Source: Anolis carolinensis
Lineage: Eukaryota
Reading direction: 5' to 3'
DNA: 64,000 nt
NCBI RefSeq assembly: GCF_035594765.1
Contig: NC_085846.1
Span: forward strand, 117,601,190-117,665,189
In this document: positions 14,651 to 50,500 of the stretch, one piece after another
Layout: each line of letters begins with the position of its first letter
Position numbering within the stretch: the first letter of the stretch is position 1
The notes under the pieces: model-generated
The model's input: the letters and a program-made list of their open reading frames with translations, nothing else
Database searches by the model: none
Told to the model about the DNA's origin: nothing
Translations under genes and position numbers: made by a program

Positions 14651-14817
14651 CCCTCCTGCTTGGGTTCACCTGTCGGGCTGCCAGCCTCCACTCTTTCCTC
14701 TTTATCTTAGGCTTCACCTCCAGGCCTTCTCCATTCTGGATTACCTCAGGCATGGTGCCAATTTGGGCCTTCCCTCCAGGTGTTTTGGACTCCAACTCCC
14801 ACCATTCCTAACAGCCG

Positions 14818-16021
14818 GTTCCAAACCTGCAAATGTGAGTAGATCAATAGGTACCGCTCCGGTGATAAGGTAATGGCATTCCATGCAGTCATGCCAGCCA
14901 CATGATCTTGGAGGTGTCTACAGACAACGCCAGCTCTTTGGCTTAGAAATGGATATGAGCACAAAGTCCCACAGTCGGACACAACTGGACAATGTCAGGG
15001 GAAAACCTTTATCTTTTACCGCCTTCAACTCTCTCCCCCCCACTTCTTCTGGATTTTATCCCTTTCAGTTCTCCCCTCTTCTAGTGTTTACCTGTTGAAC
15101 TGTCACCTCAACTCAGGGGTCTTCAAACTTTTTAAGTGGAGGGCCGATTCACAGTCCCTCAAACTGTTGGGGGGCCGGACTAGGATGAAATAGTCCAAAA
15201 TTAGGATTGTTGTTGTTGTGTGCCTTCAAGTCATTTCAGACATAGGTAAGCAAAGAAGCCTCCAAAGACCATCGAGATGGTCTCATAAGACCATAGATAA
15301 GGAAAGGGACCCTCAAAGACCATCTAGATGGTTTCATAAGACCATAGATAAGGAAAGGGGCTTCCAAAGGCCATCTAGACAATCTCATAAAACCATAGGT
15401 AAGGAAAGAGACCCTCAAAGGCCATCTAGACCATCTTATAGGACCATAGGTAAGGAAAGGGACCTCCAAAAGCCATCTAGATGGCTTCATAAGGTTGTAG
15501 CTAAGCAAAGAGACCTTCAAAGACCATCTAGGCGATCTCATAAGGCTATAAGTAAGCAAAGAGACCTCCAAAGACCAGGTAAAGTTTAGGACAGGGGCCA
15601 GGTAAATGACCTTGGAGGGCCGCATCCGGCCCCCGGGCCTTAGTTTGGGGACCCCTGCCTCAACTCTTTCCTCTTTTTTGGGCCTTACCTGTTTAACTGT
15701 CACATTAAGCTCACCCCTCTTTCGGCCTGTATTTGCCAGACTGTCTGATCTTATTCTGGGCTTGACTTGTTGGATTGTCACCTTTTATGCCTTACATCTT
15801 CTGAGCTTTACCTGTTGGACTCACCTTCAACTCTTCTTCTTCTTCTGGCCTTTACTTCCTGTCTTTACCTGTTGGCTTTTCACCCTCTTCTCTTTCCTCT
15901 TTTTCTGGGATTTACTTTGCTGGTTTGTCACCTTCAGGTCTGCTCTCCTCTTCTGGGCTATACCTGTTGGGCTATCACAGGCATGGGCCAATTTGGACCC
16001 TCCCTCCAGGTGTTTTGGACT
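14818..16021 (+). repeat. Local segmental duplication, copy 1 (copy 2 at ~21510-22713, offset 6692)
   Basis: Near-identical sequence; identical ORF translations at 14883/21575, 15218/21910 and 15236/21928. Confidence 0.95.
15114..15657. mobile_element. Non-autonomous hAT element with internal ~51-bp tandem repeats
   Basis: CAGGGGTC...GACCCCTG termini, perfect 8-bp TSD CCTCAACT, about seven internal units (aaggaaagggaccctcaaagaccatctaga...). Confidence 0.85.
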
Positions 16022-16371
16022 CCAACTCCCACTATTCCTAACAGCCGGTAGGCTGTTAGGAATGGTGGGAGTTGGAGTCCAAAACACCTGGAGGGAAGGC
16101 CCAAGTTGGCACCATGCCTGCTCTACCTGTTGGGAATTTATTTTTGTTTTATTATTTATTCATATTTGATATATACAAATACATATATTTATTTATTTAC
16201 TACATTTACATCCCGCCCTTCTCACCCCGAAGGGGACTCACAGCGGCTCACAGATAATATGTACATATAATATATTATTAGCATAGCACAACATTAGCAT
16301 TATATTTTACCATATTGTACTATACCGCCATACTCTAATATTATTACTAATATTACCTGTAATATATAATA

Positions 16372-20456: not shown

Positions 20457-21430
20457 TACAATATAATATACAATAATATAGAATGATATAATATATCGTA
20501 TATACATATAATATTGATAATATTATAATGTAATACAATTAATACTAATACAATATAATAATAGTAATTATATATTATGTATTACATGTAATGTTACTAA
20601 TAATATTACAGTATAGTGGTATAGTTCAATAAAGTAATATATAATGCTAATATTGTGCTATGCTAATAATATAATAAACTGTATGTACATATCATTTGTA
20701 AGCCACTCTGAGTCCCCTTCGGGGTGAGAAGGGCAGGATATAAATGTAGTAAATAAATAAATAAACTACAACTCCCAAAACCAGGGTCCATTCCCTTTAA
20801 CCCCTGCAGTATGTTCAGTTGGTCATGGGACTTCTCTCTGTGCCAAGTTTGGCCCCATTCCATTGTTGGTGGAAGCCACAGTATCAGTGAAGGTACTGAA
20901 TGTCCCATTATCCGTGGCAAGTTTGGTCCAGATCCATCGTTGGTTAGGTGAACAGTGCTCTCTGGATGTAGGTCAAGTACAACTCTTGTGAATCATAGTG
21001 AATTCTCCCCCAAATCTCTTGTTCAGTTGCTGATCAATTCCTCTGATAATGGTGTTCCGTAGGAAAGGGTAGGAAAGTGTTAAGGGAGAGACAGTGGGCG
21101 GGGTCATGCAAATCAAGGAACCCTGGGATGTCCATTCTGGAGGAAAAACAGAACATCTAGGATGAAATTGTCCCCACAGGAAAGCCTTCATTTGAGTGAG
21201 TGGCAGTAGTATTATAATTAATATATTAGTATTATTATATTACAATATTATTATATATTGTATTATTAGTTTTATATTGTACTAGCTTGGGTACCCGGGT
21301 TGTTTGAAAAAGGCATTGTTTGTTTTGGGGTGTTAGATAATATCATTTAGTTAATTAATAACACTATTAGGGGGGGGACAGTCTTTGATTTTGTTTTTTA
21401 CGAATGCCCCCATTAGAAAATACATAATGA
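20079..21430 (-). mobile_element. Fragments of a second Helitron-like family, interrupted by an AT-rich L2-tailed element and (TA)n
   Basis: Two related ...cccaagCTAG-T 3' ends (20079, 21282) with GC-rich subterminal sequence; 5' ends not resolved. Confidence 0.4.
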
Positions 21431-21431
21431 T

Positions 21432-21712
21432 GACCAAAAGGTCGGCAGTTCAAATCCAGGGAGCGGAGTGAGCTCCTGCTGTTAGCCCCAGCTTCTGCCA
21501 ACCTAGCAGTTCGAAAACATGCAAATGTGAGTAGATCAATAGGTACCGCTCCGGTGGTAAGGTAATGGCATTCCATGCAGTCATGCCAGCCACATGATCT
21601 TGGAGGTGTCTACAGACAACGCCAGCTCTTTGGCTTAGAAATGGATATGAGCACAAAGTCCCACAGTCGGACACAACTGGACAATGTCAGGGGAAAACCT
21701 TTATCTTTTACC
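21432..21712 (+). mobile_element. Sauria-type SINE (5'-truncated); further-truncated duplicate at ~14818-15020
   Basis: Colinear with the full copy at 50570-50892; accttt-type tail. Confidence 0.8.
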
Positions 21713-22713
21713 GCCTTCAACTCTCTCCCCCCCACTTCTTCTGGATTTTATCCCTTTCAGTTCTCCCCTCTTCTAGTGTTTACCTGTTGAACTGTCACCT
21801 CAACTCAGGGGTCTTCAAACTTTTTAAGTGGAGGGCCGATTCACAGTCCCTCAAACTGTTGGGGGGCCGGACTATGATGAAATAGTCCAAAATTAGGATT
21901 GTTGTTGTTGTGTGCCTTCAAGTCATTTCAGACATAGGTAAGCAAAGAAGCCTCCAAAGACCATCGAGATGGTCTCATAAGACCATAGATAAGGAAAGGG
22001 ACCCTCAAAGACCATCTAGATGGTTTCATAAGACCATAGATAAGGAAAGGGGCTTCCAAAGGCCATCTAGACAATCTCATAAAACCATAGGTAAGGAAAG
22101 AGACCCTCAAAGGCCATCTAGACCATCTTATAGGACCATAGGTAAGGAAAGGGACCTCCAAAAGCCATCTAGATGGCTTCATAAGGTTGTAGCTAAGCAA
22201 AGAGACCTTCAAAGACCATCTAGGCGATCTCATAAGGCTATAAGTAAGCAAAGAGACCTCCAAAGACCAGGTAAAGTTTAGGACAGGGGCCAGGTAAATG
22301 ACCTTGGAGGGCCGCATCCGGCCCCCGGGCCTTAGTTTGGGGACCCCTGCCTCAACTCTTTCCTCTTTTTTGGGCCTTACCTGTTTAACTGTCACATTAA
22401 GCTCACCCCTCTTTCGGCCTGTATTTGCCAGACTGTCTGATCTTATTCTGGGCTTGACTTGTTGGATTGTCACCTTTTATGCCTTACATCTTCTGAGCTT
22501 TACCTGTTGGACTCACCTTCAACTCTTCTTCTTCTTCTGGCCTTTACTTCCTGTCTTTACCTGTTGGCTTTTCACCCTTTACTCTTTCCTCTTTTTCTGG
22601 GATTTACTTTGCTGGTTTGTCACCTTCAGGTCTGCTCTCATCTTCTGGGCTATACCTGTTGGGCTATCACAGGCATGGGCCAATTTGGACCCTCCCTCCA
22701 GGTGTTTTGGACT
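21510..22713 (+). repeat. Local segmental duplication, copy 2 (likely donor)
   Basis: Matches 14818-16021; here the SINE is longer and the terminal MITE retains its TSD. Confidence 0.95.
21806..22349. mobile_element. Non-autonomous hAT element (duplicate of 15114-15657)
   Basis: Same TIRs and same CCTCAACT TSD, so duplicated with its flanks rather than transposed independently. Confidence 0.85.
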
Positions 22714-22807
22714 TCAACTCCCAGAATTCCTAACAGTCTACTGGCTGTTAGGAATTCTGGGAGTTGAAGTCCAAAACACCTGGAGGGCCCAAGTTTGACC
22801 ATACCCG
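22670..22807. mobile_element. Palindromic hAT-type MITE
   Basis: CAGGCATGG...CCATACCCG arms; 8-bp TSD ggctatca/ggctatct. Confidence 0.8.
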
Positions 22808-25458: not shown

Positions 25459-25862
25459 ATGGCCTCCCTCCCGGCTGCTTCCCCGCCCTCCCCTCCGCCG
25501 CCTCCGCCTGAGGAGAAGGCCGAGGCCCGGCAGGCCGCGCTGTGGGGCCGAGCGCGGAGCCTGTGCCGCCGCTTGCGGGCGCTGCAGGCCCGGCAAGTGG
25601 AGCGGCACGTCCGGCAGCAGCTGGCCGGCCTGGCGGCGGCGCCTTCTTCCGTCTCTCCCGCCACTTTGGGCCCGGAGCTCCGCCGCTTGGCCTCCTCAGC
25701 CACCGCCCGCCTCCGCGCCGCCCAGCTCGGCTGCGACTCCGACGCCACCGCCTCCTCGGCCTCCTCCTCGGTGTCCTCCTCCTCTTCCTCCTGCTGCTCC
25801 TCCTCGTCGTCGTCGGACAGCGAGGACCCCGAGGCGCCCCCGCCGACGCCCCCAGACCCCCG
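25459..25862 (+). CDS. KANSL1-like coding exon 1 (coiled-coil region)
   Basis: [41 protein letters not shown]; donor CG|gtaagc. Start codon inferred from the in-frame stop at 25420. Confidence 0.85.
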
Positions 25863-26531
25863 GTAAGCCCCGAAAGCAGGCCTCAGAGCGGTTCTCCCTT
25901 CCTCCTTTTCCTCCTCCTCGTGTTCTTCTCCTCCTCCTTTACCTCACCTTCCTCTTCTCTCTCTCCTTCTGTTTCTCCCTTCCCTGTTGTTTTTCTTCTC
26001 CTTCTTCCTCCCCTCCTTCCTTTCCTCTCGTTCCTCTCATCCTCCTTTTCCCTTCTCCTCATGCACTTCCCCCCTTTTCCTCTTCTTCAGCTCATCCTTT
26101 TATTTATTTATTTATTACAACATTTATATCCCGCCCTTCTCACCCAAGAGAGGACTCAGGGCGGCTTACACACACATAAAAACTGTACAGTACCTTTTCT
26201 CCTCTTCCTCTCCTTTTCTCTTTCTTCTTCGTGTTCTTTCTCTCTCCTTTTGTGTCTCTTTTCTTCTTCCTCTCCCTTAACCTGTTCTCCATCTCTTCCT
26301 TCCCCTAGTGTTTTTTATTCTTCCTTCTCTTCCCCTCTTCCTTTCTCCCCTCTTTTTTCTCATGTCTTCTTCCTCCCCCGCCCAGTTCTTTTCTTCCTCC
26401 TTTTCCTCCTCATCTTCTCTTTCCTTCTCTTCTTGTTCTACTATTCTTCCTTTTCATTTTCTCCGTTCCTTCCTTTTTTCTCCTCTTCTTCTCCTCTTTC
26501 CCCCTTCTTCCTCACCCCTTTACTTTACCTT

Positions 26532-26579
<48 letters not shown>

Positions 26580-29500
26580 CTGTTTCTCTTCTCCCTGTTG
26601 TTTTTTATCCTCATTCTCCCCCTTCCTTTCCTCCTCTTCTTCCTATCTCTCCCCCTCCATGTTTTCTTTCTCCTCCTTTTCCTCTTCTTTCCTCCTTCTC
26701 TTCCTCCTCCTTTCCCTTTTCTACTATTCTTCCATTTCATTTTCTCCTTCCCCTCCTTCTCTTCATGATCTTTTTCTCCTTTATCTCACCTCCGTCTTCT
26801 CTTATTTCTTTCCCCCTCTGTTGTTGTTCTCCTTCTCTTTCTCCTCCTTTATTCTCTTCTACATCTCATCCTCCTTTTCCCTTCCTCTTTGTGTTCTTTC
26901 CTTTTCTCTTCTTCCCCCTCCTCCTTTTTTCCTTCCTCTTCCTCATGTTCTTTCTCTCTTCCCTTTCCTCTCATTTCTTCTTCCTATCCCCATCCCTGTT
27001 CTCCTTCTCCATTTCCTCTTCTTCTCTCCTCCTTCTCTTCCTCTTCCTCCTCATGTTTTTCTATTCCTACTTTCCCACCTCTTCCCCTCCTCTTTTCATC
27101 TTCTTCCTTTTCTTTTCCCCTTCCTCCTCCTCCTCTTCTTTCCCCTCCTCTTGTTCTTTCTCTCCTTTTCCTCTCCTCTCTATTTTTTCTTCTTCTCCCA
27201 GAATTTTGTTTGCCTCCTTCTCTTTTTGCTTTTTCTCTTCTTCTTCCCTCTCCTCATGTTCTTTCACTCCTTCTTCTCCTTCTCATTCCCCTTTTTCTCT
27301 TTTCTTTCTTGAACTTCTTCCCCTCCTACTCTTTCTTTTCCACTTCTTCTTCCCCCTTCCTCCTTTTCTTCCTCTTTTTCTTCTTCTTTCACCCATCCTC
27401 TTTCTTTTTCCTTCTCATCCTCTTCCTTTTCCTCTTCTCATCTTCTCTCCCACTTCTTTCTCTCCCCTTGTTATTGTTGTCCTCCTTCTTCACCCTTTCT
27501 TCTTCTTCCCCCTCCTCTTCCTTCCCCTTGTCTTCCTTTCTTCATCCTCCTTTATCCTCCTCCTCCTCTTTCTTCTTCATCCTATCCTATTCCTTTCTTT
27601 TTTTTACTTTTTCAGTTTCTCTCCTTTTTTCCTCTCCTCTTTGTCCTCTTTATCTCTCTACCATTCTTTCTTTTATTTTATTTACTTCATTTCTATTCTA
27701 TCTTGCTCTTCTTCCCTCTAGGGACTCAGTAAGGCTAATAAAAACATAACACTGCACAATGCAATTTAAAAGCAAGGCAAACACATATTACTATAGACAT
27801 TGTTTAAAAACCAATAAAATATTTGTTTCATGGATACGAAAGGTAAAATAATAATTACATTAATAAGTAAATATCCTTCCCACAAATCCCATCCACAGCT
27901 TCCCCAGCAACGTGCCCCTCCTTCTCCCCCAAATGCCTGATTGCAAAGATGTGTCTTAACCTGCTTGCAAAGGGGGAGGGAGTTCCAAAGTCCAAGTGGA
28001 GCAACCACCAAAAAGGCCCTCTCTCCCTCTTTCCCACGAAATATGCCTGAGAAGGTGGTGGGACAGAGAGAAGGGCCTTCCTAGAGGATCATAGATTTTA
28101 AGACGCTTCTCATCTTTCCTCTCCTTTTCTTTTTCTTTTTCTCCTCCTCCTCCTCCTCTTTTTTTGGTATATGCTGAGGTTTTGTTGGCGCACACCCAGG
28201 AATACCAAAATCTGTAGGTGCTTATAGGTGCTTAGAATCGTAGAGTTTGAAGAGAACACAAAGGCCAGCCAGTCCAACCCAACTGTATAATGCTGTAATA
28301 ATAATAATAATAATAATTTTATTCTTGTATCCCGCCCCATCTCCCCGTAGGGACTCGGGGCGGCTCACATGGGGCCTTGCCCAACATCACAATATAAAAA
28401 CAAATCAAAACACATAAATTTACAACAATAAATCAACAATATCAGTAAAACCATCATAAAAACAATATTGCAGGAAAAAGCGTTAAAAACAGATATAAAA
28501 CACAAGTCTAGGCCAAAGGGCGAATGTGTCAAAGTAAGTAAGAAGTTAACTTTGCATTCTGAAATCTAGCATTTGCATAAATGCAAGGCAGAGGGATTGG
28601 TTTTGTCTATATAAGTCTTCAAATCATCTAGGGTTCGTAGGATTTTCTTAGGCAATGGATATGTGTCATTTTCCTCCCCTGAAACACAGCTTATATTCCC
28701 TGTCCAAGTACTAAATGACAAAACCCACTATTGTGCCTTTCAACTTGAAAGCTCTTGGAATGGGTAAGAAATCCGAAACAGAAAAAAAGAGAGCAGCCTG
28801 AGCGCCAGGGAGGTGTAGTGGTTTGTGCATTGGATTAGACACCTGTGGGCCACGCAGCCCTCCAAGGTCATTTACTTGCACCCGCCCTAAATTTTAGACG
28901 TGGGTTGCTCTGAGTCTGAAACTATTTGAAGGCCCACAACAACAATCCTCATTAACATGACTCTCATCAGTCAAAAATCAGGCCCACTCTTCCCATTGAA
29001 ATACTGGTAAGCTATGTTGGTTTAAATCGTTCTTCATTTTAAACACTGTCTTGTTCTTTCATGTTTTTTACACTACAAATAAGATATGTGCAGTGTTAAT
29101 AGGAATTTGTTTTTTTTTTCAAATGGTAGTCTCTTCCCTCCCCCAACAGATTTGAGGAACCATGAACTGGCCCTCGGCTTAAAACGTTTGAGGACCCCTG
29201 CACTAGGTGACCTTGGGCATGTCACATCCTCTCAGTCTCAGAGAAAGACAGAGGCAAGCCCCTCTGAACCAATCTTGTCAAGAAAACCCTATTGTACTTT
29301 AGGCTTAGGTTTGCAGTAAGCCAGAAACAATTTGAAGGCACGCAATACAACAGAGCAGCCTGGCTAAGAACAGCAGGATGAGATTATAAAACCATAGTGA
29401 CCATTGAGGGGCAGGAAATGAACATTTTTGTTTGCCATTTTCTGTTAACATTATTGGTTTTGAAAGGCGAAACCAGCATTAGCACAGCATTAGTTTCAAG

Positions 29501-35500: not shown

Positions 35501-38500
35501 AGAAATAAAGCCCTTGGGAAATCACAGCAGGAAGTGGAGTGATCCAAGCAATAGCCACAGATGCCTTTGGCGGTAGGAGTTCTGATCCTGAGATAAGTGA
35601 ACATTAGCACAGTCACAGAAGTTTCCAGTCCCCTCCTTTCCCTGTGAGCCACAAAGACCACTCTTGGGAATCCACGAATAATGATGAAGTGCTAAAATTA
35701 CAGAGTGGAGGAGGGATAGGAAACTTTCTTTTTGTGAATGTCCTTATGGTGACTTCACTTGTGCTTAGGGAAGGAGATATACATTAAATTAATAAGAAGG
35801 GGCTATCCAGCTTATTTCCTCATTTCCTGTGGTGAACCCACAAACAGAGCAGGAAAGTAGTAAGCTGTCTTCTACTGTATATATCAGTTGTTACTTGGAA
35901 ACATATTTCCTTTGATACGTTTGGAAGTAGTAAATGGCCTTTGTCAGCTCCCTAAATTATGTCTGATTTGCTTTTTAAAGCCTTACCAATGGATGGATAA
36001 GTCTGCAGTATATTGCTGTGCAGTCCTGGGTTTAATTGTCTCATAGCCTACAAGGTCTTGTCCATGATACTTAAATGTTTTTGTTTTACTTTTCTTCAAG
36101 AAGGAGGTGGCACTTTGATTCTTAAAAGACTGGATTTTAAAAGGCACGATCTTTCTTGCTAGAAACACATGAATTGGGACATGGCATGGGGAAATGAAAT
36201 TTATTGCTTTTAGTAGGCATTTGCTATATACTTGTCACTTATGTATGTCTTATAATTAGAACTATGCAAAGAGATTGAAGTGTGAGAAAGTGTTGCTAAC
36301 AACATGCAAACGCTTCCTTTTCAGGCGACGGCTAGCCGAGCACCAGTGGGCCGTGGAGAGAGCGGCCATCATCTGCCGATGGACCTGGCTGCAGGCTCAG
36401 GTGACGGACCTGGAGTATCGCATAAGGCAGCAGACCGACGTTTACAAGCAACTTCGTGCCAACAAGGTCAGGCAGTTTCAGACTTTTCAGGAGATTTATT
36501 TTAACTTCCTCTTTTAGCGTCACTAGATCACTATTTAGATAATACACCAAATGTCATCCAAGAGGGTTACAGCTGTGCACTATAGGTCTGGATTATCGTG
36601 GAAATTTCGGACTAGATTAACAATAGAATAAGGATATATACTAATGAAAAATCTGAGGCTGATAATTTGTGGTTTGACTTTGTAGCCAGTTGCTATTTTT
36701 AGCAATATGAAAATGTTCCCCTTTGAGCTAGGTGGGCCTTTGTTGGGATTTCAGAGTGTTTAATTTGTTAATGACCACAGTTCTTAAAAGAAATAAATCA
36801 GATTCTTTGAATTATATGGTCTGGATTCTAACACTGAGATTGTAATGATGGCCTACTTTTAAGAGTGTATCTTGTCTTACAAATCTGTTACGTTGTTCCT
36901 GAGTTGTTCCACATTGTTTTTCTTTCACACCCAGAATATACTTTGCTTTCTTTTTTTGGTCTCCACTCTTTAACAGAAGTTTTCAGATTTGATTTCTTCC
37001 TTAGACATCCTTTAATGGTGATATTTGCTGCTGAGTTGTCCTTGTGGTTGAAACGCTACAGAGTTACTTCTTTGCTTGAGGGGAACTAGTTCATCTTAAA
37101 TGCTGATAAGAATATCAGGCCTATTAACCACATGTACATTTAATCCAGTGAATTGATTGTGTGGGAAGATGCAATCAAACTGCATGATTTTCTTTGGTAC
37201 TCAGATGACACATCCTGAATTTAACATGTTCTCACATTGCGGCACCTGATAGAAACAGTTGTCTGTGTGATATTCACCTGGTGTCCTTTGAGTTGATGTT
37301 GATGGTTTAACTTAAGCTTTTAATTTTAAAAAGTTTAGTTGGTAGTGCATATAGTCCTTAAACTTTGTTTCATTTCAGTTTTCATACAAAACGAAACAAA
37401 ACCAGCAATTTTCTAGAAAAATACAAAAGTTTACTCACTTACGAACTGGCATGAAAATGTTTGGAATCTGAGTTGGATCAAAATTGGTTCACAAAAATGC
37501 AGTCTGGAGCAAAATACACAGAAACCTGAATTGTGTGTTTGAAAGATGTCCAAAGTACTGTATATATTCGAGTATAAGCCTAGTTTTTCAGCCCTTTTTT
37601 AAGACTGAAAAACAACCTCCTCGGCTTATACTTGGGTGAGGATTCTGGTGGGCTTATATTCAGATCGGCTTATACTCAAGTATATGTGGTATATTTATTA
37701 TTTTTCTCTATTATTATTGGTATTGTTACATTTATTTTACTCTATTAATTTTTATTATTACATTATTTTACTCTGTTGTCACATTTACATTTTACTCTAT
37801 TTTTATTATTAATACATTTATTATTTTACTGCATTTGTTGTTATTATTATTACATGTATTATTTCACTCTATTATTATTAAAAGGATACATAAGCACATT
37901 TCCATTGAAGAAGATGAAAATAATGATTTAATCAGAGTTGAACAATCATATCTTAAATTACAGTTTGATGTAAAGATTCAAAAACATTTAAACTACTGAA
38001 GCCTTAATTTTATTAGTATCTCGTCTTATACTGGAGTCAATGTTTTCCCAGCTTTTTTGTGGTAAAATTAGGTGCCTCGGCTTATATTCGGGTCGGCTTA
38101 TACTCGAGTATATATGGTAGTTGACATCTCAGGTCCAGAGCCTTACTGCGTTCTTAGCTTTGCTTAGTTAGATAACACAGCAAGTTTAATGACTTTCATG
38201 ATAAAGTATGTGGATTTGGTTAGGTTGATAAGCAGGTGGTATAGATAAGACTTCACAGAAGAGTCCCAAAATCTTCCTCTTACATCATTCTCTGCTACAG
38301 CCGTATAACCCAGAATATCAAGGCAGATAATCCACAATATCTGCTTTGAACTGAATTATCTGAGTCCATACTGTCATATAATTTAGTTCAATGTGAAATT
38401 CATACAGCTGTGTGAAAGGGGTCTTAGTTTGCGGATTGAGGAGTTTAATTCTAAATGTAGACAGTTTGTATTTGTGTGTGTATATCCTCAGCTTCTAGGA

Positions 38501-41500
38501 AACAGGTTGGAGAGGCAAGGATTTTGCACAGAGGCCTTTGTTTTAAATGCAAGACTGTGTTTCAGCTTGCATTATCCAAATTGCCATTCTTGAAATGCTT
38601 AGCAGATTGCATTATTGAACATTATTCAATTAATCTCCTATTTCTTTGGAGTTATTTAGTTCTCTTATTTGGAATGCTTGATACATGTATGGTGTGCACA
38701 CTTTGACACTGTCTTGTAGTATCAGAAATGACATTATGAGATGGTGCTGGGTTTAGTGTTGTAAAGGAGAGAATACTTCTGGAACATGGCCACACAGCCC
38801 GAAAGACATACAACTACCCTGTTGTAAATTTCTTTGGGTTAGTGTCCAGATCTTTGCCAGTCTGAATTCTTAGATTCATTTTTTATTTTTGCCAGAGTTT
38901 CTCTGTGTCTGGTTCTTTGTGCATATGAATATTTTTCTTCTTCGTGGTGCTTCTGTGGAAATCGCACATATGGGATTTCCTACTGCGCCTGCGCAGCATT
39001 TCGGAACCTTCTGGAAGCTCTAAGTGAAACTTTTCGGCGCGAGCCCCGCCCACTCTCCCCAGTAGAGTATATAAGGCCCTGTGGGCGGGGCTAGGCAGTT
39101 CCTTTTTTCCGCCGTTCAGTCAGCATCTAAGGAACCTCTAGCTCTGTGTGATTTATTGATTGACTTTTTGGACTTGACTCGGACCGGTTTTATCGCTACG
39201 TGACACCTCTCTCAACCCTAACAACTCGGAAAGGACTTGACTTTGGCATTTGGACAACCCTAGGCAGGCTAGTGACGATGGCTTCGTTTTTTAAGAAATG
39301 TGGGGCGTGTGGAGGCAAGCTTCCTGAGGCCGATGGCCATTCGAAATGCCTCCTCTGTCTGGGGGAGAGTCATAATTCCCAAGCCTGCCAAGTATGCCGG
39401 GGGTTTACCCCTCAGGCCAGGAAAAATCGCGAGTCTAGGTTAAAAGCGCTCCTTTACGAGCAGGCCCTGGCCCCAGTAGCTCCGACGGCGGCTGTCGAAG
39501 CTGAGATGACTATTCCCGCAGCTGAGGGGAGGGATTCCCCTTCCACAGTGGGCCCCTCACCGCTGCAAGCGCCTCAAAATGGCGCGGAGGAAGAACCCCC
39601 AATCTCCTCAGGTCTTGGAACTTCTCAAAAAGCGGTTCCCAGGGCGAAAGAGGGCCGTAAGAAGGCAAAAAAGACTAAGCATATAGGAAGCGCTCCTCTG
39701 CAGAGGCCCCGGCCCCAGCTTGCCTCACAAACCCCAGATAACGCTGAAAACTTACCGGATGGGTCCCCCGGATTGCAGGGCCCCCCTCCTTTGACTCCGG
39801 TGGAACCGTTGGCGTCGCGAGCGCTTTCTCCTCCGAGAATTATCCCTGCTCAGCCGGTACCTAGGGTGCCGAGCGTACAGCAGGAGGCGCTGAGGGGGAG
39901 GAGGAGAGAGAGGAGAAGAGACAGGAGATCAAGTTACACTTCCAGCTCACAAAGCTCCTCTCCCTCTCCCAAGAGGCCCAGAGGGGCTCGTTCAAGCCGC
40001 CACCGCCGTCATTCCTCCTCCCTGAGCCCGAGGAACTCAAGATCTCCCCTGCAACGGGGCTCTCCATACCCATACGGGCCAAGCTATTTTCCTCCGGACC
40101 CACGCTTCCCATTTATGTTCTATGGCCATGGCCTTCCTCCTTACCCCCTCCCACCTCCTGGATTCGAGGGATTCTACCCTCTCGATTCCTACGGCCGCCA
40201 GCTAACGCCGGGTTCAGGGGGAAGCCACGCCCATGCAGCCTCACCGCTGGGCGCGCTGATGGAGCCACGCCCACATAGCGAAGCCTTGAATTTGGGGCGG
40301 GCTCCTGAAGGCCCAGACTCCTCCCTCTTGGCAAAGCGCCCAGCCTCAGGCGCAGCGCTGGGAACGGGGCCTCCTTTCGCAGCCAACAGCATTCCAATGG
40401 CGCAAGTGGCTTCCCAGCCGGAGCAAGCGTCTACTTCAAAACTAGCTCACGGAATCGGATCCCTGGATCCCGACCAGGCAGTTCAACTTGGAAATGAGGC
40501 TGGGAAGACTCAAGAAGGCCCAATCTCGGAGGTTGACCCTCATGAGGATGTCGATCCTCCTTCAGCTGAGGACATTAGGAGTTTCACTGCCTTACTGATA
40601 AGACTCTCCAGGGCTCTAAATCTTCCCACTCCAAAGCCCTCCAAAATTGTGGAAGACCCAGTATTTCCTTCTTCAAAGCAACAGGCCCCAGCTACTACAT
40701 CATTACCTTATCTCCCATACTTGGTAGAGTTAGTAAAAAATGAAGGAGTCCCACCAGCCTCATTGCCTGCAACCCCAAGGAGGGCAGAGTTTCTCTATAA
40801 GGTTGATCTCTCCGGAGTCTCATGGCTGGCAAAGCAGCCTAAGCTGAATTCGAGGGTGGTGAACGTGACCCAGCCTAAGGCAGTACAAAGATCCCAACCA
40901 ACCCCCCCAGATAAAGAAGGGAGGAAATTGGATAGTTTCGGGAAGAAATTCTACACCTCAGCCTGCCTGTTCGCCCGCATTGCCCACTATGGGGCTTACA
41001 TGGGGGCATATCAGTCGTACCTCTGGGACAAAATTGCCCCCTACATTGACTTGCTCCCTCACGGGGATCAGGCCCTAGCGAGGGCATTTCGTCAGGAGGC
41101 CGTCCTCTTATCGGATCTCCAAAAGGAGCTGGCAAAGAATACAGCCGATGCGTCCGGCAAACTTCTGGCGGGAGCAATCTCTCTGAGACGCCATGCCTGG
41201 CTGCGGGCAGCTAACCTGTCGCCGTCAGCAAAGTCCGTCATTGAAGATCTCCCTCTAGATGAGGCGGGTTTGTTCAACCCTGAAACTGACGCCGAGATTA
41301 AAGATACTCACGAGGTCACCCAAGCAGCCCACAAATATGGCGTTCAACCATCTTACTACTATTATCAGAGACGTCGTTGGGGGCAATACTACCGCTCCAG
41401 AAGGGCTAGCCCTCCATCCTCTAGAGGAAAGCAAAAGCTTCCTTTTCGTCCCCAGGGACTTAGGAGGTCATCATTCCCCTATAGGTCTCAAGCACGGGGG

Positions 41501-44500
41501 GGAGGCAAGCCAGGTGAGAAGCAAAGACGCCGGTTTTAGCGAGTCCTTTGACTTGCCATCCCCTCCAAGTTCGGACCCCCTTGTTGAAGGTTGGCCTTCT
41601 CATAGTTCTGTTAAAGTTGAGTTTTCTGGTCACTCGTCGACCTCAACGCTGCACCCTTCTGGGGTAGAGGACGGACGTTTCCTATTCAGGAATAGGTTGG
41701 CCCCATACCTAGAGGCATGGAAAGGGATAACATCAGATGCATGGGTTCTAGACATCGTAAAGAATGGCTACGCCATTGAGTTTTTTTCCCACCCCCACAC
41801 CGGAACCCCTCGCCCAACGGCACCTTCTGAATGCCTCCGGGAGGAAGTAGCTACCCTACTAAGGAAAGGGGCGATTTCTAAAACGCCTCGTGGTAGAGTC
41901 AGGAGATGCTTCTTTTCGAGGTACTTTCTAGTCCGCAAAAAAGGTGGCGGTATGCGCCCCATCCTTGACCTAAGGGCCGTCAACCGTCACATTAGGGCCC
42001 GCAGGTTTAGGATGGTGACACTAGCTTCCATCCTCCCCTTTCTCCACAAGGGCATGTGGTTTGCTACGGTTGATTTGCGTGATGCCTATTTCCACGTGGC
42101 GATACGGCACTCGCACCGAAGGTTTTTGAGTTTTATGGTTGGTGACACCTGTTTTTCTTTTAACGTACTTCCTTTCGGCCTCTCCACAGCGCCAAGAGTA
42201 TTTACTAAATGCATGGCCGTGGTAGCTGCGTACCTTAGACAGAATGGCGTTATAGTTTTTCCTTATATAGATGATTGGCTTCTGGTCAGCCACTCTAGGT
42301 CTCACCTTGAATCTGATATTTCATTTACCCTCTCCCTCCTGCAGAGGCTTGGACTTGTAGTAAACGAAGAAAAGTCCCAACTTACTCCGACGCAAAAGAT
42401 CCAGTTTATTGGGGCTACTTTGGACTCTGTGGTCGCGAAGGCCTATCTGCCGGAAGATCGTTTTCGCACCATTCGTGCGGCAGTTACAGGACTCTGCGTA
42501 AAGAAACGCACTACAGCTTGGGGTATCCAGTCCATCCTTGGCCACATGGCCTCTACTACGTCGCTTGTAGACCTAGCGAGGCTCAGGATGCGCCCGCTTC
42601 AGATATGGTTCTTAGGAGCATTCAACCCGCTCCTCGACAGTCAACACATGCGTCTGACCCCTCCGGCCGGCATCGTCAACTCGTTGACATGGTGGACAAG
42701 GAGGCGCAACCTGCTGGCGGGCCTCCCCTTCCAACCATCAGAACCTACTCACGAGCTCACGACAGATGCGTCCCAGTATGGCTGGGGAGCGCACCTCGAT
42801 GGCCTCACCGTCAATGGGAAATGGTCCAATCATCACCGCTCCCTGCACATCAACATTCTCGAACTACTGGCCGTAGAAAAGGCACTCCGCGCATTCGTTC
42901 AGAGTCTCAAAGGAAAGACACTGAGGATAGTAACAGACAACACCACAGTCAAGTACTATATAAACAAACAGGGCGGGACACATTCGAAGGCCCTGTTGGC
43001 CCTCTCCTTGAGAATATGGGACTGGTGCGTGCGCAGACGGATGCGGATCCAAGCTGTCCATCTTCCAGGGAAGGACAATGTGCTAGCGGACGCATTGAGC
43101 AGGTCACCTTCATCCAGCCACGAGTGGCAACTGAACCACAGAGAGTTTCGACTCCTGGCTCGTCGCTGGGGTTGGCCAACGATAGATCTTTTTGCGTCGC
43201 CTCAGAACAGCCACTGCCCCGCCTTCTGCGCTCGCCTACGGCCCCATGCGAGCCCGGGATGCCTGGGGGACGCGTTCCGCTTCTCATGGTCGGGGGACCT
43301 GCTCTACGCGTTCCCACCCCTTCCGTTGGTAGGCAAAGTGGTCACCAAACTGATCGCGGACAACTCAGATTGCATTCTTGTGGCCCCTTGGTGGCCCCGT
43401 CAGACGTGGTTCGCCCCCCTTTGGCAGGCTGCCAGAGGGGAATATCTCCAGCTCAAACCCTCACCAGATCTCTTGACGCTCCACAACGGCAGAGTCAACC
43501 ATCCGGACATAGAGACTCTGCGACTCACAGGGTGGAGGATCAGGCCCCACAAGCCCTCTCTTCCCCAGTGAGGGCGATTCTTCAGGCGGCTCAGAAATCC
43601 TCAACAAAGAAGGCTTATAAGTATAAGTGGGATAGGTTTAGGAAGTTTGTTGAACCCCAGGGACTGGATCCCATCTCGGCCCCTACGCCGGTGATTCTGG
43701 ACTTCCTTGTGCACCTCTCAAAAGAAGGCCTCTCCCTTGCTTCTTTGAAATGTTACGTAGCCGCCTTATCATGGTATAGGAAAGGGCCCTTGGGTCATTC
43801 TTGCTTCCAGGACCCCCTAGTGAAGCTCTTCCTAAAGGGGTTTCAGAACTTGCATCCTCCAGCAACACCACCACCACCTGCTTGGAGCCTGGAGCTGGTG
43901 CTCTCCCAACTTTCAAAGCCTCCTTTCGAGCCATTGGCCTCCTGCGATATCTGCCATCTCTCCTGGAAGGTAGCCTTCCTTGTAGCCATCACATCTGCGA
44001 GGCGGGCCAGTGAACTGTGCGCCCTCAGGGCTGATCCGCCATACTTACGTTTCCACGCCGACAAAGTGGTGTTGAGGACGGACGTCACATTTCTACCTAA
44101 GGTCGTTTCGAGATTCCACATGTGTCAGGACATTTCATTACCAGCCTTTTTTCAGAACCCCTCTTCAGCACTGGAGGTGGCGCTGCACTCCTTGGACGTC
44201 AGGAGGGCACTGGCGTTTTATATTCAAAGGACATCGGAATTTAGAAAGTCACCTCGTCTTTTTCTCAAGTATCGGCCGGATGCACTGGGCACCCCCGTCT
44301 CTTCCCAGCGCTTAGCCTCCTGGATAGTTTCGACGATTCGTCTAGCGTACAGACTTGCGGGCCAAGAACCTCCGCAAAGGGTGACGGCGCATTCCACAAG
44401 AGCCGTAGCGGCATCCCAAGCCTTTCTCAAAGGGATCCCCCTTGAGGATATTTGTAAGGCGGCGACGTGGTCATCATCATTCACCTTCGCCTCACACTAC

Positions 44501-47500
44501 AAACTTGACATCATGGCTAAGAAGGACGCGGCGTTTGGGAGAGCAGTTCTCTTCTCGTGCGTGGCATGACCCGCCACCTCCGGTGAGTAGCTTGTTAATC
44601 TCCCATATGTGCGATTTCCACAGAAGCACCACGAAGAAGAAAATGTAGTTGCTTACCTGTAACTGTGTTTCTTCGAGTGGTGTTCTGTGGAATTCGCACA
44701 ACCCGCCCATCCTCCCCGCTGATTTCATGCCACTGGGCTATAGCTGCTTCCTGGCGGCGGGGAACTGCCTAGCCCCGCCCACAGGGCCTTATATACTCTA
44801 CTGGGGAGAGTGGGCGGGGCTCGCGCCGAAAAGTTTCACTTAGAGCTTCCAGAAGGTTCCGAAATGCTGCGCAGGCGCAGTAGGAAATCCCATATGTGCG
44901 AATTCCACAGAACACCACTCGAAGAAACACAGTTACAGGTAAGCAACTACATTTTCTTCTCGTTCCTCAGGGCCCTGTTGTCTTGGGAGATCTCCAGCAC
45001 GGAGGTGTGATGAAACAGCCAGGTCCATTAGGCTCTGTCAGAAAGAATAAAGTCCTGTCCTCCTCCTCCTCTTGCCTCCCAAAGGTGCCTCCTGGAGACC
45101 GCCAGTGTAACCCGTCTCCTTGCATCCCTTCCTACCTCCTGCAGAATGCAGAGAAACAGGTCAGTGTCTGGAGAAAGCAGGCTCCTCTACACAAATGGGG
45201 GCAGTATTGATCCAGAAAAAACTTAGCAGAGTGTTGCCTCTTGTTCTTAAAACCACATTGCCTTGGACTAGGTCTTGAAAAAAATGTGCACTTGATTACT
45301 GGGTGATTTGAAATTCATTTATTTTATAATTTATAATGGAGATTTCTAGTGCTTAGAATGGTACTGGCTTCTACATATCCTAGGTTCTAAACTCCCCCCC
45401 CCCCCCCCACACACACACACAGACATACACCCAGGCTTAGATAAATGGGAGGGGTAGATCTATTAGCTGCTGAGCGCATGAGTTTGTAAAAAGTCTTGCT
45501 ACATGCTGTGTCAATAAATAGCTGACTTTCATTCTACTTGGCCTGCCTGCTGTTATTTCTTTGGTTAAAAAAAATAAAATCTTTGCTTTTATTTTATGTT
45601 AGATAACTGATTTGTAATATAATCTAGTTGGATGGTTCTGTAATACAGCATGTGGAGTGTAAGATACTTGACTGATTCTGCCCTTGGGCTTTTCTGATAT
45701 ATATAATTTGTGTAATTTCATTGTTTAGCCCACCCGAGTTTCCCACTACATGCAGCATTTTATCTATCTACCTCCCTCCCGGGTTTTACAATTTCTACAC
45801 CTTGCACTTTGGCCCACCTCGCCTTTGTTTAAAACTTTGTACTGTTTTTATACTTTCTTTTATTATGCCATTGTTACTATGTTTTGTTTTACTTTGTTAT
45901 TGTATAAGTATTTTATTGGATGTTGTCCTGTGTCTTGTATGTATTTTATGTTGTTTTATTGCAATTGTTTGGGCTTGGCCCCGTGTTAGCTGCCCTGAGT
46001 CCCTTTGGGGAGATGGAGGCAGGATACAAAAATAAAGTTGTTGTTCTTGTTGTTATTATTATTATTATTATTATTGCCAGAAACATGATATAGATCTCTC
46101 TTAAGACAAGCAATTGACAGAATTCAAGCTTGCAGGGCTTCTCTTGTAGACCAGGTGCATTCTGGTAGCACAAATACACATTGTGTTCAAGAATTACGGC
46201 CTCAGTTGTGTGTGCTGAATGCCAGGCCTTTACAGAACCCACACTCGTTATTCACTCTAGTTCAGCTTAGGCTTCCTTCATTCCAGCAGTACTGCTTACA
46301 GATTTGCTTCCCTCATGTCAGTCTATCATAAAAGGACTGGAGAGCTCCCAGTAGATTCTGAATTATCTTTTTTCTCTGATTATTAGTTGTCTTCTGTCAT
46401 AAATGAGGTCTGGATAAACTAACTTATTTCCCCCTTTGAATTCTTTCCTCTTTGTTAATTCTACCATTCAAAGCTTCCTTCTCAGTCCTTTTTGTAATAA
46501 TCTCATCATTCTTAACACTGTGTCATTGAGTGAACCGAGGTTGAAACGTAGGAAGTGTCTGAAGTCATTTGAATTTTGGGGCTAAACCGGGATTTTTAAA
46601 TCAAAGTGAAAAACTACCTTCAAACCTTCCACTGCCCCTCCATACCGACTTTCTAGAGCGAGGTGAATCTTTCTCATTTCTTTACATGGGGTTCTTAATC
46701 CTTTGCTTCATTTCTTCTGAGTTGTCTCTTGTTCATCCCTAATTTTCCCATGCACTCACTTTATTTCTCTTGTACTACCAGAGATTGTGCCTGGTGGCTG
46801 CCCAGGTCATGGTGATGTGTGAACTAGCAGCTGAGAATGTTGTCTTAATGTTTTTTCCTACCTATCCACTCACAAGTTCACAGTTCTTTCAGAAAACCTC
46901 TCTCCCAATCATCCTCCTACAATTTGCACAGAGAAATCAGCACTTTTTGTGCTTGATGGCACCTTTTTATTTTTAAATAATAAATGAATGTGGTTGTTAT
47001 ATTGGAAGTCTTCCTTAGCTTGAGGAAAGTGGCTTTTATTTGTTGTTTGAGGTGATAGGTCTAATAGGGCAAGTGCTAATTCCTTTTTGTAGGTCATGGC
47101 TAAACTTATTAGTCCTGGTATTTGAACAGCTGGGAATGAGGCACTTGCTCTTGATCAGAGCGAGGAGCTGTAGGAGGCTAGAAAGACTGCATTAGCCCCA
47201 GGGAGGCCTTGTAGGGCTGCAGCCCCACACCATCCTATGCAGAAGAAGTCTGTTTTTTTTTTACCACAATTTGTTCTCCAGATAACCTTTTTGGTCCAGA
47301 AGAGTTTTGTCTTTTTTTACAACAGGGCTGTATTGGTTATTATCTTCTCAACTTGAAAAGTCCCAGTTAAGGGCAACATGTGATAAAAATGTTCCCCACA
47401 CTTTGTGGAGGATATTTTGGGTGCAAAAAAATTAAATACTTTTTGACTCCATGGAGATGCATGTGTCCTACGGCTATGGCTAAGCCTTGCTCGCATCACC

Positions 47501-50500
47501 ATGACCTGGGCAGCTATCAGACACAATATCTGGAAATACAAGAGAAGTGAAGAGAGTGCATGGGGAAAATTGCTCTGGAGAACTTTCTGTACTGAAGTTT
47601 ATACAGCACTTGACTACATTTCAGAGAAAATTATCCTGCGATCTTAACTTCAATCCTTGTGGACCTGTGTAACGAACGTTAGGCTTTAATATATTCAGCC
47701 TGTCATTTGAGGGTCTTTTGCATTTTGAACTTCAGTCTCTGAATTATCCTTTTTTTGTCCAATTGAACATACTGCATTTACAGTTTAAATCAGAGATAGG
47801 TTTCCTACTGCCTTTCAGATTTTATTTCAGTGGAAAATCCTGAGAACCATAGCTGATAGTGAAGAATGCTGGTAGCTGCAGTCTGACTGCCTCTGAAAGG
47901 CTATGTGATTCCTATTTGGATGTATCCAGCTTCTACTCAAGCTTTTATGTACAGTTTTTAAATTGCTGTGGGTCCTGATGTTGCAGTTTCGGCTTATTGT
48001 TTTGTGAAAGAGGATAGAGTACAATTTCCCAGGTGATGCCATAAAAGTGGCCTGTGTTCCCTTGGAGGCATGATGCTCTGGCTTCTGGACTATCTCCAGA
48101 TTTTTTTCTCTGACCCCTGGTCTATTCAGGAATGTCTACATGGTTATAACCCAGTCCTGTGCATATCTGTTTTGAAGAAAGCCCCCTTGGCTCATTCGAG
48201 TCAACTTTTGCTTCCTTCTCTCAAAAAACAGCTTTTGAACCGTCCCTGGTTGCCTTATTCAGGGCTGGACCATGCATGGGTGCATCAAAAGCCTAAAGGC
48301 AGAGAAACATGTGGTACTGAATTTACAGTTTTTTGGTATAATACATGCTGAGGTCTATGGATTTTCCCTCCTTCCATCTGTGAATGTTCAAACATCTTCC
48401 CTACAAGGAGACCTACTTTCTTCAATGTCACTAAAGGCTCAGCTTCCTTTGCCATCTTCAAGTATAAAGATAAAAAATCTCATCTTAAGACTCTGTTGAC
48501 AATGGTGTTTTATAGATGAATTGCCTGGCAGCCTTTGTTTTCGTGTTTATAGTTCAATGTGGCAGAAATAGTTGGTGTGTGTGTTTTGGGAATTGCTTTG
48601 CCACATCTTGAGTGGCTGTTAAAATGCTATATGCTTTGTGTTACCTTTGTCATGCAATAGAATGTCAGAATACCATTGTTAGGGTCAGTTTCTTAATCCA
48701 GGGGCATTGTGGTCATTATGAAGAGGAAGAAATTGCTGAGTACACTATTTTCTTTCGTAGACACATCCAATTGTATCTTAATTTGGGTTTCTTTGGTGTG
48801 ATCACAGATCTTTTGAGAGAAAATGAATGGAAAAGGCCAGGAGATGGCTCTGGATTATCCCTGCTGAGATGGCAAGCTCCTTGGCGCTTTGTTAATTTGC
48901 TGTTTGTGTGTTCTTTCCTTCTTCCTGTCTGCTTCCAGTCTGCCAAGCAAGTTTTCTGATTCCTTTTGTCACAGGCCTTCCTTGAGTCTGAGATTGTGTT
49001 TTTCTCTTTCAGAATTCTCGCCTTGCGCAGTCTTTCAGAAACCTTGTGTGTCAAAACCCCACCTGTGCCCCCATCAATGGGTCTCCAGAGCCCCCCAAAG
49101 CCTGCACGTCACCCCATCAAGTCAACGGAATCAGTAACTGGTTAGTCCTCCTTTTCTTACAGGTTGATAATTGTGATGTTTGGGAATTTGTCTTGCTGGG
49201 TCAATGTTAATGTCCTATATTGGATTTAATGGAAAGAGACAACAATGTAAAGGGGGTTCTTTTGGGGGAAGATCTCTCCAATTTGTGTTACTGTAATTGT
49301 ACATATTTTCAGGCTGAAGTTATGATCCATAGTTTTGTGAAGCTTCTTGTGAGAAATGGGATACATTTAGATTGTTAGTAGAGGGGTTGTAACCTAACCT
49401 TGGTCACAATTCATATTTGTTTGCGTGGAAAACAAGCACATTCTATGTTTCTTAGGTACAATTCTGGAGTTAAAATGTGAGATAACCTCAGTTTGAAGGT
49501 CACTCACATTCTGGAGGGACAAGGATAGGGGATACAAATGTTTACTGAAAACATATATTTAAAGGAAATATTGGCTGAGTTTAGCATTTGTGTCCAACAC
49601 AATGGGATAACTTTTAATTCTGCTCAGACTCTAAATCTAGTCTGGTGGGATTGGCAAGTGCTGACACAGCTGTATAATTTTTAGGGTTTGTCAGTTTTAC
49701 TGCTTTGTAACAGATGTAGAAGATACTCTTTCTCTTGGACTTTGAGGAAGGCACTTGACTGTAAGAAGTGTACATTATTAGGTACAGGCTGAACTGTATG
49801 AAAACTTGGCTTCAATCAGAATTTCTTTTTTTCTGAATTACCTTCTGATCCCCATCTTCTCTTCTGCAGAAATAGCAGCAAGAAATGTGGCTGTTCTCAA
49901 TAAATCCTCATGAGAGCCATTTCAATGCAAGGTCCAGAGTTTACATGCAAAGGATAGCTTGTTTTGGCTCTTTGTGAAAGGGAACCTTGCTGTTCTTAAA
50001 AATAATAACTTTTTATCAGTGGAAGGATGGTGATTATCTGTTTTTGTGCTGGACGTGGTTCAAAGTTCAGACTTCTTGCCTGTTGGGCATATAAAGAATA
50101 CATTACATTTCATTACTGTTTCTGCAGCTTTGTTAGACATTTCTTTTTTACATTGTTCAAGTTACGGATCCTTGAATGCTTTATAGAAATGCTTGTCCCT
50201 TGCTTCTTGTTTTTCTGCTTGTACATTTCTGAAGATTTGAGGATTGTAAAGGAGCATTCTTGTGCTGATGTGACAGTGGCTATTGCAAACACATTTCATG
50301 TACTGTAGATCTGAAGTACGACAAGGGGGGGAAGCTAAGAAAATTCCTTTTCTACTGTGTCAGCACTGATTTTTAATGTGTGTATAGAACTTAGGAACCT
50401 TTAATACAGTGTGTTTTTTAAAACTGTGCAGGTGGGATTCCTCCTGTGTGGCTGGTATGTGTGGGAAGTAAAGGATGCTTTGTGGTCTGATCCACTTTTC

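Follow-up and report, generated by a model that had tools for sequence, protein, structure and literature searches.

A probable recent and conservative insertion of a coding-intact DIRS1-like retrotransposon next to a splice acceptor of a putative KANSL1-family gene in Anolis carolinensis

Results

In this work, we have analysed a window of 64,000 nucleotides from Anolis carolinensis (contig NC_085846.1, positions 117,601,190 to 117,665,189), and our results strongly suggest that positions 38933-44960 of this stretch are a full-length, coding-intact DIRS1-like tyrosine-recombinase retrotransposon, lying in the orientation of the host gene and recently and conservatively inserted in an intron of a putative KANSL1-family gene. 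A preliminary description of the same DNA had presented the element as an intact DIRS, and its anatomy bears this out (features are on the + strand unless stated otherwise). Inverted terminal repeats (ITRs) of 152 nt are present, the left one at 38951-39102, with a TATA-like tatataa and GC boxes pointing inward, and the right one at 44761-44912 on the - strand. The two arms are complementary at 151 of the 152 positions, the sole mismatch being at 38961, and the inner 141 nt of the left repeat (38962-39102) are identical to the opposite arm, as that description had held. Upstream of the left ITR there is a terminus (38933-38950) matched by the internal complementary region (ICR) only, and beyond the right one a right extension (44913-44960). 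In the ICR (44601-44700, 100 nt), the complements of the two outer termini adjoin each other. Its positions 44601-44643 match the left end 38933-38975 in reverse complement without a mismatch (43/43), and its positions 44635-44700 do so for the right end 44895-44960 (66/66). Both parts overlap at 44635-44643 on the circular junction, which is the 9-mer TTTTCTTCT. This 9-mer occurs once in the ICR and at both ends of the element, at 38933-38941 and, within the right extension, at 44952-44960; the left copy is common to the target and to the circle junction, and the crossover would have taken place somewhere inside it. The added length is 6,019 bp, with 0 bp duplicated and 0 bp lost. Target-site duplication thus appears to be absent, with the junction motif at both ends, and a break in the contigs of other animals at 44952 (see below) is what a single-copy empty site predicts.

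The three open reading frames that had been reported are all open. ORF1 (39278-41539, open from 39200) codes for a gag-like protein of 753 aa from its ATG, with 0 Pfam families matched. ORF2 (41259-43571) carries the Ty3/gypsy-related reverse transcriptase, with YIDD, and the RNase H found in DIRS elements (Pfam RVT_1, 80.4 bits against a cut-off of 29.6, 2e-22; RT_RNaseH, 31.8 bits against 24.8, 1.6e-7). Its C-terminal part is a candidate methyltransferase-like domain, whose match to PCIF1_WW (adenosine-methyltransferase-related; 21.6 bits, 1.8e-4) is below the cut-off of 31.1; the motifs DLFA and FPP were noticed by eye in this ORF. A word search of a protein database with ORF2 yielded no pol protein close to identity, the nearest ones (Pogona, Anolis sagrei) being 51-58% identical, a search that is uninformative on copy number in this genome. 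ORF3 (42518-44569, with Met codons at 42605 and 42821) overlaps ORF2 by 1,054 nt and codes in its last ~340 aa for a Cre-like tyrosine recombinase, which stands in place of a DDE integrase. Here the Pfam families Phage_integrase and SAM-like N domain match in the right order, both below their cut-offs. The recombinase has 214 homologues, the closest (87%) from Anolis carolinensis, and its relatives bear the names 'Tyr recombinase domain-containing' or 'Core-binding domain-containing'. Residues R155, K188, H285-x-x-R288, W311 and Y321 are invariant in 16 aligned sequences. In a PDB search the single sequence gave no match, and the family profile alone reached Cre, matching the Cre/Tre recombinase across both domains (E 2e-7). 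Two candidates were discarded: the protein P0121 ('IP6K3 isoform X1') as a host-DIRS chimera arisen by exon capture, since over its whole length it is DIRS ORF3, and a gag-YR readthrough fusion, both being in the same frame, since in this copy 24 stops lie in between.

The element had also been described as young, and three features agree with this: the ICR matches the termini at 100%, no ORF is interrupted, and the CpG o/e is 0.68 in the element vs 0.31 and 0.16 in the flanks. From this identity, the intact ORFs and the undecayed CpG content we consider the insertion recent. The identity of the ITRs was not used as a clock; their single difference is also copied in the ICR, and hence is structural. 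The suggestion that the family is active fits the finding that one other sequencing run, X1, from an individual with an empty site at this place, contains pieces of the DIRS body with 0-1 differences at about its own single-copy depth. The left terminus was not found in a metagenome scan.

Is the insertion fixed? We compared the stretch around the right junction with Logan contigs of other sequencing runs, four of which were aligned. In three of these, X1, X3 and X17, each from a different study, the DNA contigs follow the window rightwards from exactly 44952, a position that is not among the repeat places skipped by the alignment tool. Upstream of it they carry unlike letters (139 in X1, 27 in X3 and 140 in X17) that disagree with the DIRS end. 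The evidence for the empty site is this exact break point; that the upstream contig letters are the left flank is inferred rather than read. The reconstructed host target has the order GAATAT-TTTTCTTCT-CGTTCC, and the empty site proposed in the preliminary description is thereby upheld, as the contigs of three other individuals leave the window sequence precisely where it predicts. Since these contigs are without the element at this place, the insertion would be, as had been supposed, polymorphic, or else private to the assembled animal; contigs show presence, so heterozygous carriers are possible.

An assembler could have placed a DIRS copy in this intron so that no animal has it there. The junctions are known from the assembled sequence; none of the runs listed contains the junction words (at most 0.79 of the words of the junction stretch are present in any of them), and none of the four aligned runs (0/4), among the contigs listed, has a contig bridging 44951/44952. 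Against this, the insert is exactly one complete element with the ends that its own ICR predicts, and the 9 nt of the circle junction link it to the flanks without the gain or loss of a single base. A mis-join would not mimic the product of conservative recombination between two unique flanks that in other animals lie next to each other, and we therefore regard an assembly artefact as very improbable. Even less probable, in our judgement, is that an older, once-common insertion was precisely excised elsewhere, by the recombinase or through the repeats, between the 9-nt copies, the empty site being the derived state. Tyrosine recombinases can in principle reverse an integration between two hybrid sites, and the empty site in the contigs is exact. 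But the features that mark the element as a recent arrival (100% identity of ICR and termini, intact ORFs, undecayed CpG) speak against such a history, excision is outside the published DIRS cycle (PMC7192593, PMC3266345), and DIRS insertions of low frequency are the norm in the green anole (PMC7561263). A recent insertion is thus retained, and it is most simply another of the Dirs insertions known to be polymorphic in the green anole, in whose populations 6,873 of them have been counted, at a mean frequency of 0.15 and under purifying selection (PMC7561263).

By their likeness to the human KANSL1 and KANSL1L proteins, the host exons would belong to the KANSL1 / KANSL1L family; single exons gave no match in Pfam, PDB or the protein Atlas. 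The upstream exon (36325-36466), of the coiled-coil region, ends in the donor AAG/gt at 36466/36467. The exon that follows the element (44971-45159) is covered by a contig of run X19, a run recognised as RNA by its spliced contig. In it, the end of the upstream exon at 36466 (...GCCAACAAG, seen as a loose end ...CGTGCCAACA(AG)) is joined to 44971, and 45159 to 49013 (GT..AG). Continuing over the downstream exon (49013-49140), the RNA contig has a further loose end behind 49140. The exon thus has the 189 nt, phase 0/0 and neighbours that had been assigned to it; for the neighbours themselves, the junctions at 36466 and 49013 stood, and the upstream start and the downstream end were corrected to 36325 and 49140. 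A pre-mRNA contig of X19 has the A allele of a linked G/A difference at 45294, the same as the individuals with the empty site, and the X19 RNA contig is most likely from an insertion-free haplotype.

The element lies, as claimed, beside the acceptor of this exon: its right end is at 44960, and the last 10 nt of the intron, cgttcctcag (44961-44970), are unchanged in the DNA contigs of X1, X3 and X17, which match from 44952. The distinct sequence of the element ends 19 bases before the exon, and the right copy of TTTTCTTCT ends 10 nt before it. A position inside the polypyrimidine tract had been proposed. The element does adjoin the tract, but it does not break it: the target and the circle junction share nine nucleotides, and thus the whole tract, which makes up the final 19 nt of the intron, is unchanged. 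To call the insertion 'inside the tract' is bookkeeping; in sequence terms, the element has the branch-point region on one side and the tract on the other. In the empty allele, the native branch-point region would be 38923-38932, with adenosines at 38923, 38925, 38928, 38929 and 38931. In the reconstructed site, the only adenosines from -55 to -20 are those at -29 to -21, and some 6.04 kb now separate these candidates from the acceptor, so the claim that the branch-point region had been pushed 6 kb away is sustained. The right extension brings branch-point candidates of its own, A44935 (-36, CAGTTAC) and A44942 (-29), overlapped by a strong donor-like motif CAG/GTAAGC that would be cut at 44938/44939, and further donor- and acceptor-like sites occur in sense within the element, donor-like ones among them at 44582/44583 and 41513/41514.

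Discussion

From the anatomy of the element and the model published for DIRS, we propose that a circular DNA copy entered the chromosome by recombination, catalysed by the Cre-like tyrosine recombinase that the element encodes. In this model, the circle junction recombines with an identical short genomic sequence and no target-site duplication is made (PMC3266345, PMC7192593). The circle junction, as recorded in the ICR, would have read ...CAACTACA-TTTTCTTCT-TCGTGG..., and the host site would have had the same nine bases (...GAATAT-TTTTCTTCT-CGTTCC...). The exchange would have been conservative, with all 6,019 bp gained and the nine bases now flanking the element on both sides.

In Cre-type enzymes, strand exchange spans 6-8 bp, and the recombinase of the element is Cre-like by its profile match to Cre/Tre. 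The nine shared bases could be no chance, the recombinase having chosen a site for its likeness to the element's own junction and left end; DIRS integration would in that case need or prefer a Cre-like identity of 6-9 bp. In the window, 14 of the 3,945 TTT sites in the host part (0.35%) share at least 6 extra bases with the circle junction, and the identity spans 9 nt where the published model needs 3 bp (PMC3266345). This is, however, a single event, selected after the fact. Moreover, the left junction of another copy, GGCCAA/TTTCTTCTTCG in an RNA contig, has a different base before the T run. We consider a selected site unlikely. It is similarly doubtful that, for the recombinase of a eukaryotic retroelement, the insertion and its empty site amount to an attP x attB pair resolved to the base, with DIRS integration obeying Cre-like rules. 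If true, this would imply a strand-exchange region of 6-9 bp and a preference for pseudo-sites like the element's own junction, and the choice of DIRS targets would be predictable. Conservative recombination of the circle at a short identical sequence is the reading on which we proceed, and the case bears on how much identity a DIRS recombinase needs. It is among the few DIRS integrations in which the product, the circle junction (via the ICR) and the empty target are all readable to the base.

Previous work has characterized related elements. XtDIRS2 and XtDIRS3 from Xenopus tropicalis (Piednoel et al. 2011, PMC3266345) are likewise ~6 kb long, with three ORFs, a long overlap of pol and YR, ITRs with left and right extensions and no target-site duplication. 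Their adjoining ICRs are 43-61 and 41-65 nt, compared with 43 and 66 nt in the anole element, and a T-run (TTT/AAA) circular junction is common to them all; unlike in these elements, the identity between junction and target in the anole is 9 nt, not 3. DIRS-1 from Dictyostelium discoideum (Malicki et al. 2020, PMC7192593) has the same architecture as the anole element, and experiments showed that its ICR is essential for retrotransposition; DIRS-1 clusters in centromeric heterochromatin, whereas the anole copy is in the intron of a euchromatic gene, beside an exon. The anole recombinase also resembles the Cre/loxP and phage integrase (attP x attB) systems, both in its core-binding domain and in its Cre-like catalytic residues (R, K, HxxR, W, Y); these systems likewise insert conservatively and leave a short identical core at both junctions. 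In contrast to them, its substrate would be the reverse-transcribed circle of a retroelement and its target specificity loose. In the green anole, the same phenomenon was described by genome-wide short-read statistics (Bourgeois et al. 2020, PMC7561263), whereas the present analysis describes a single insertion base by base, together with the empty site and the position with respect to a splice acceptor. Elements of this type have been published before, and so have their activity and polymorphism in this species. The insertion is accordingly no new kind of biology, but a well-documented and ordinary case of DIRS elements that are still active.

What are the consequences for the host gene? Every candidate native adenosine has been moved 6 kb upstream, so carriers would either recruit U2 to adenosines of the DIRS right extension, the best substitutes probably being those at -36 (CAGTTAC) and -29, or mis-splice. 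We lean slightly towards the prediction that most transcripts of carriers retain exon 44971-45159 by using a branch point within the DIRS element. Substantial skipping of the exon or use of pseudo-exons is predicted with a probability a little short of even, in view of the strong donor-like CAG/GTAAGC that lies over the candidate branch points and of the further splice-like sites in sense. The locus is thus a natural experiment, in which a 6-kb element in sense parts the branch point of a constitutive exon from an intact pyrimidine tract and AG. In place of the native branch point the element supplies adenosines of its own, and a consensus donor overlaps them. The KANSL1 family comprises chromatin regulators that are dosage-sensitive in humans, and for this reason a splicing defect could cost fitness. 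Such a cost would agree with the report that DIRS insertions in the anole are under purifying selection (PMC7561263).

Structure and integration of the DIRS element

Our results confirm as a whole the preliminary description of an intact DIRS element beside a host splice acceptor, and its structural and population parts are supported. A complete DIRS1-like element occupies 38933-44960 on the plus strand, with inverted repeats, an internal complementary region (ICR) and three open ORFs. The inverted repeats (38951-39102 and 44761-44912) are 152 nt long; their inner 141 nt are identical between the two arms, as had been stated, and their one mismatch lies at 38961, where the left arm has A and the right arm T. 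The same difference is mirrored in the two ICR halves, and is thus built in rather than a post-insertion mutation. The ICR (44601-44700) is composed of the complements of both element ends: in reverse complement, 44601-44643 matches the left end 38933-38975 at every base (43/43), and 44635-44700 likewise matches the right end 44895-44960 (66/66). These halves share a nine-base overlap, so that each end of the element carries a copy of TTTTCTTCT (38933-38941 on the left, 44952-44960 on the right) and the ICR has its complement once. The Xenopus DIRS elements in the table of Piednoel et al. (PMC3266345) have ICR sizes close to these 43 + 66 nt and a T-run junction closely like that of the anole element. 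All the testable defining features of the DIRS1-like group are present, and the element is one more example of this well-known kind.

ORF1 (plus strand, ATG 39278 to 41539) codes for a gag-like protein of 753 aa that matched no Pfam family. ORF2 (41259-43571, plus strand) carries the RVT_1 (2e-22) and RT_RNaseH (1.6e-7) domains, both above the Pfam cut-offs, and a methyltransferase-related match that is sub-threshold only. ORF3 (42518-44569, plus strand) overlaps ORF2 by 1,054 nt, and its last ~340 residues form a tyrosine recombinase. In Pfam alone this recombinase stays below threshold, and a PDB search with the single sequence found nothing. It has 214 homologues, the closest from Anolis carolinensis (87% identity), in keeping with the species label green anole, and then from A. 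sagrei (70%), and several carry the source names Tyr-recombinase or core-binding-domain protein. R155, K188, H285-x-x-R288, W311 and Y321 are invariant in an alignment of 16 sequences, and the family profile matches the Cre/Tre recombinase across both domains (E 2e-7). The gag ORF1 and the recombinase ORF3 lie in the same reading frame (frame 2, 39200-44569) with 24 stop codons between them, which rules out a readthrough fusion in this copy. Along its whole length, the Anolis carolinensis database protein XP_008107944.1 (P0121), which bears the name 'inositol hexakisphosphate kinase 3 isoform X1', is a product of DIRS ORF3/recombinase, and its gene model is therefore misnamed. Its start Met corresponds to position 42821, and its identity with ORF3 is 87% in the recombinase part and ~47% in the pol-overlapping part.

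The population evidence comes from Logan contigs, which demonstrate presence and not absence, compared over 43900-49800 (the right junction and two exons). Three DNA runs, each from a different study (X1, X3 and X17), have exon-covering contigs that match the window rightwards from exactly 44952, where the right TTTTCTTCT begins and which is not among the places skipped as repeats; past this point the contigs continue with 139, 27 and 140 letters, respectively, that disagree with the DIRS end. As the empty allele reads GAATAT-TTTTCTTCT-CGTTCC, its match to the filled allele must end at 44952, and from this exact break point we take all three animals (3/3) to carry the empty allele. The share of junction-stretch words present, at most 0.79 in every run listed, agrees with this reading and does not prove it. 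The suggestion that the insertion may be polymorphic is supported, the insertion being polymorphic or private to the assembled animal. Position 45294 differs from the window in all four runs (the three DNA runs and the RNA run X19), and 46223, 46311 and 46449 differ in all three DNA runs; the assembled haplotype is thus distinct, and these four intron positions could mark the insertion allele by linkage.

The insertion added 6,019 bp, with zero bases lost or duplicated and nine bases common to junction and target. In the published model (PMC3266345, PMC7192593), a circular copy recombines through its junction with a genomic sequence identical over 3 bp, and no target site is duplicated; the anole insertion fits and extends this model. 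In an X19 contig, the left junction of another DIRS copy reads GGCCAA/TTTCTTCTTCG (window place 44642), which indicates that the flank meets the element at the T run and that CTTCT is part of the left end. Only 14 of 3,945 TTT sites (0.35%; host part of the window, TTT as core) share at least six extra bases with the junction, a rarity that is suggestive but concerns a single event picked after the fact; that the recombinase truly prefers longer junction-target identity seems to us unlikely.

Age and activity of the element

The element had been described as very young, and this holds: across 100 nt the ICR agrees fully (100%) with the termini, the three ORFs are open, the CpG o/e is 0.68 (vs 0.31 and 0.16 in the flanks) and the insertion is absent from the contigs of three other animals. 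X1, whose contig has the empty site, also holds pieces of DIRS body (43974-44131, 44110-44239 and 44241-44369, each with 0-1 differences) at about the depth of its single-copy DNA, so either at least one near-identical copy lies elsewhere or X1 is a heterozygote. DIRS termini are far commoner than DIRS body. For the green anole, the literature counts 42 DIRS families with 775 sequences (PMC3266345) as well as 6,873 polymorphic Dirs insertions, which are under purifying selection and have a mean frequency of 0.15 (PMC7561263), and the signs of youth together with the near-identical pieces all fit this published picture. X19 contigs with loose ends at 44642, 44648 and 44678 join ICR-like DIRS sequence of other copies or subfamilies to unrelated sequence; DIRS-related RNA is thus present in this sample, and it is not the exact sequence of the 38933-44960 copy.

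Consequences for splicing of the host exon

The host exon downstream (44971-45159, plus strand) has 189 nt, 63 codons and phase 0/0, is preceded by cgttcctcag and was not created by the DIRS element. X19 is shown to be RNA by a spliced 3,056-nt contig across this exon, which upstream of 44971 reads ...CGACGTTTACAAGCAACTTCGTGCCAACA(AG), the end of exon 36325-36466, and downstream joins 45159 to 49013 with GT..AG ends. This shows the exon structure 36466 / 44971-45159 / 49013-49140 to be real, and the size, phase and neighbours proposed for the exon are correct. At 45294 the X19 pre-mRNA contig differs from the reference allele, so the RNA in which the exon is seen in use most likely derives from an insertion-free haplotype.

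The element had been placed inside the polypyrimidine tract. It does adjoin the tract; the tract itself is unchanged, the element lying between it and the branch-point region. Indeed, the filled allele keeps the final 19 nt of the intron as they were, and with them an intact AG and pyrimidine tract (84% pyrimidine). Between -55 and -20 (counted back from the exon), the empty allele has adenosines at -21, -23, -24, -27 and -29 alone (window 38923-38931), among which the native branch point must lie. These now stand ~6.04 kb upstream, in agreement with the 6-kb displacement proposed before. The right extension of the DIRS element offers two adenosines with U at -2 as candidate branch points, -36 (CAGTTAC) and -29 (AGGTAAG), and we are only slightly inclined to think that carriers would still include exon 44971-45159 via such a DIRS-borne branch point. 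Both candidates overlap a consensus donor-like site, CAG/GTAAGC (44936-44944, cut 44938/44939), the best of the element (simple matrix 11.2 vs 6.0-8.6 for the gene's own donors). Since its complement GCTTACCTG lies in the ICR (44651-44659), every faithful family copy must carry this site. The element further contains donor-like sites with cuts at 41513/41514 and 44582/44583, together with a number of sense acceptor-like sites, and no sense AATAAA was found in it. That carriers would instead skip the exon to a substantial degree, with an in-frame loss of 63 aa, or use a pseudo-exon is accordingly almost as likely, and a splicing consequence of the insertion is, from the sequence, plausible. What makes this case valuable is that one DIRS integration is reconstructed at base level and that a branch point has been replaced naturally.

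By their resemblance to the human proteins, the host exons presumably belong to a KANSL1 or KANSL1L relative; single-exon searches of Pfam, PDB and the protein Atlas gave no match. Upstream of the CpG-island first exon of the host gene sit two direct copies of ~1.4 kb (~14700-16100 and ~21400-22800). They are 99-100% identical and lie 6,692 nt apart, and the interval between them contains no long ORF; in appearance they are either the LTRs of a young non-autonomous LTR element or the product of a recent tandem duplication. At 6000-14000 and 26000-28000 there are long low-complexity tracts rich in C and T, where the GC skew falls as low as -0.76, the latter directly following the GC-rich first exon region (25459-25866).
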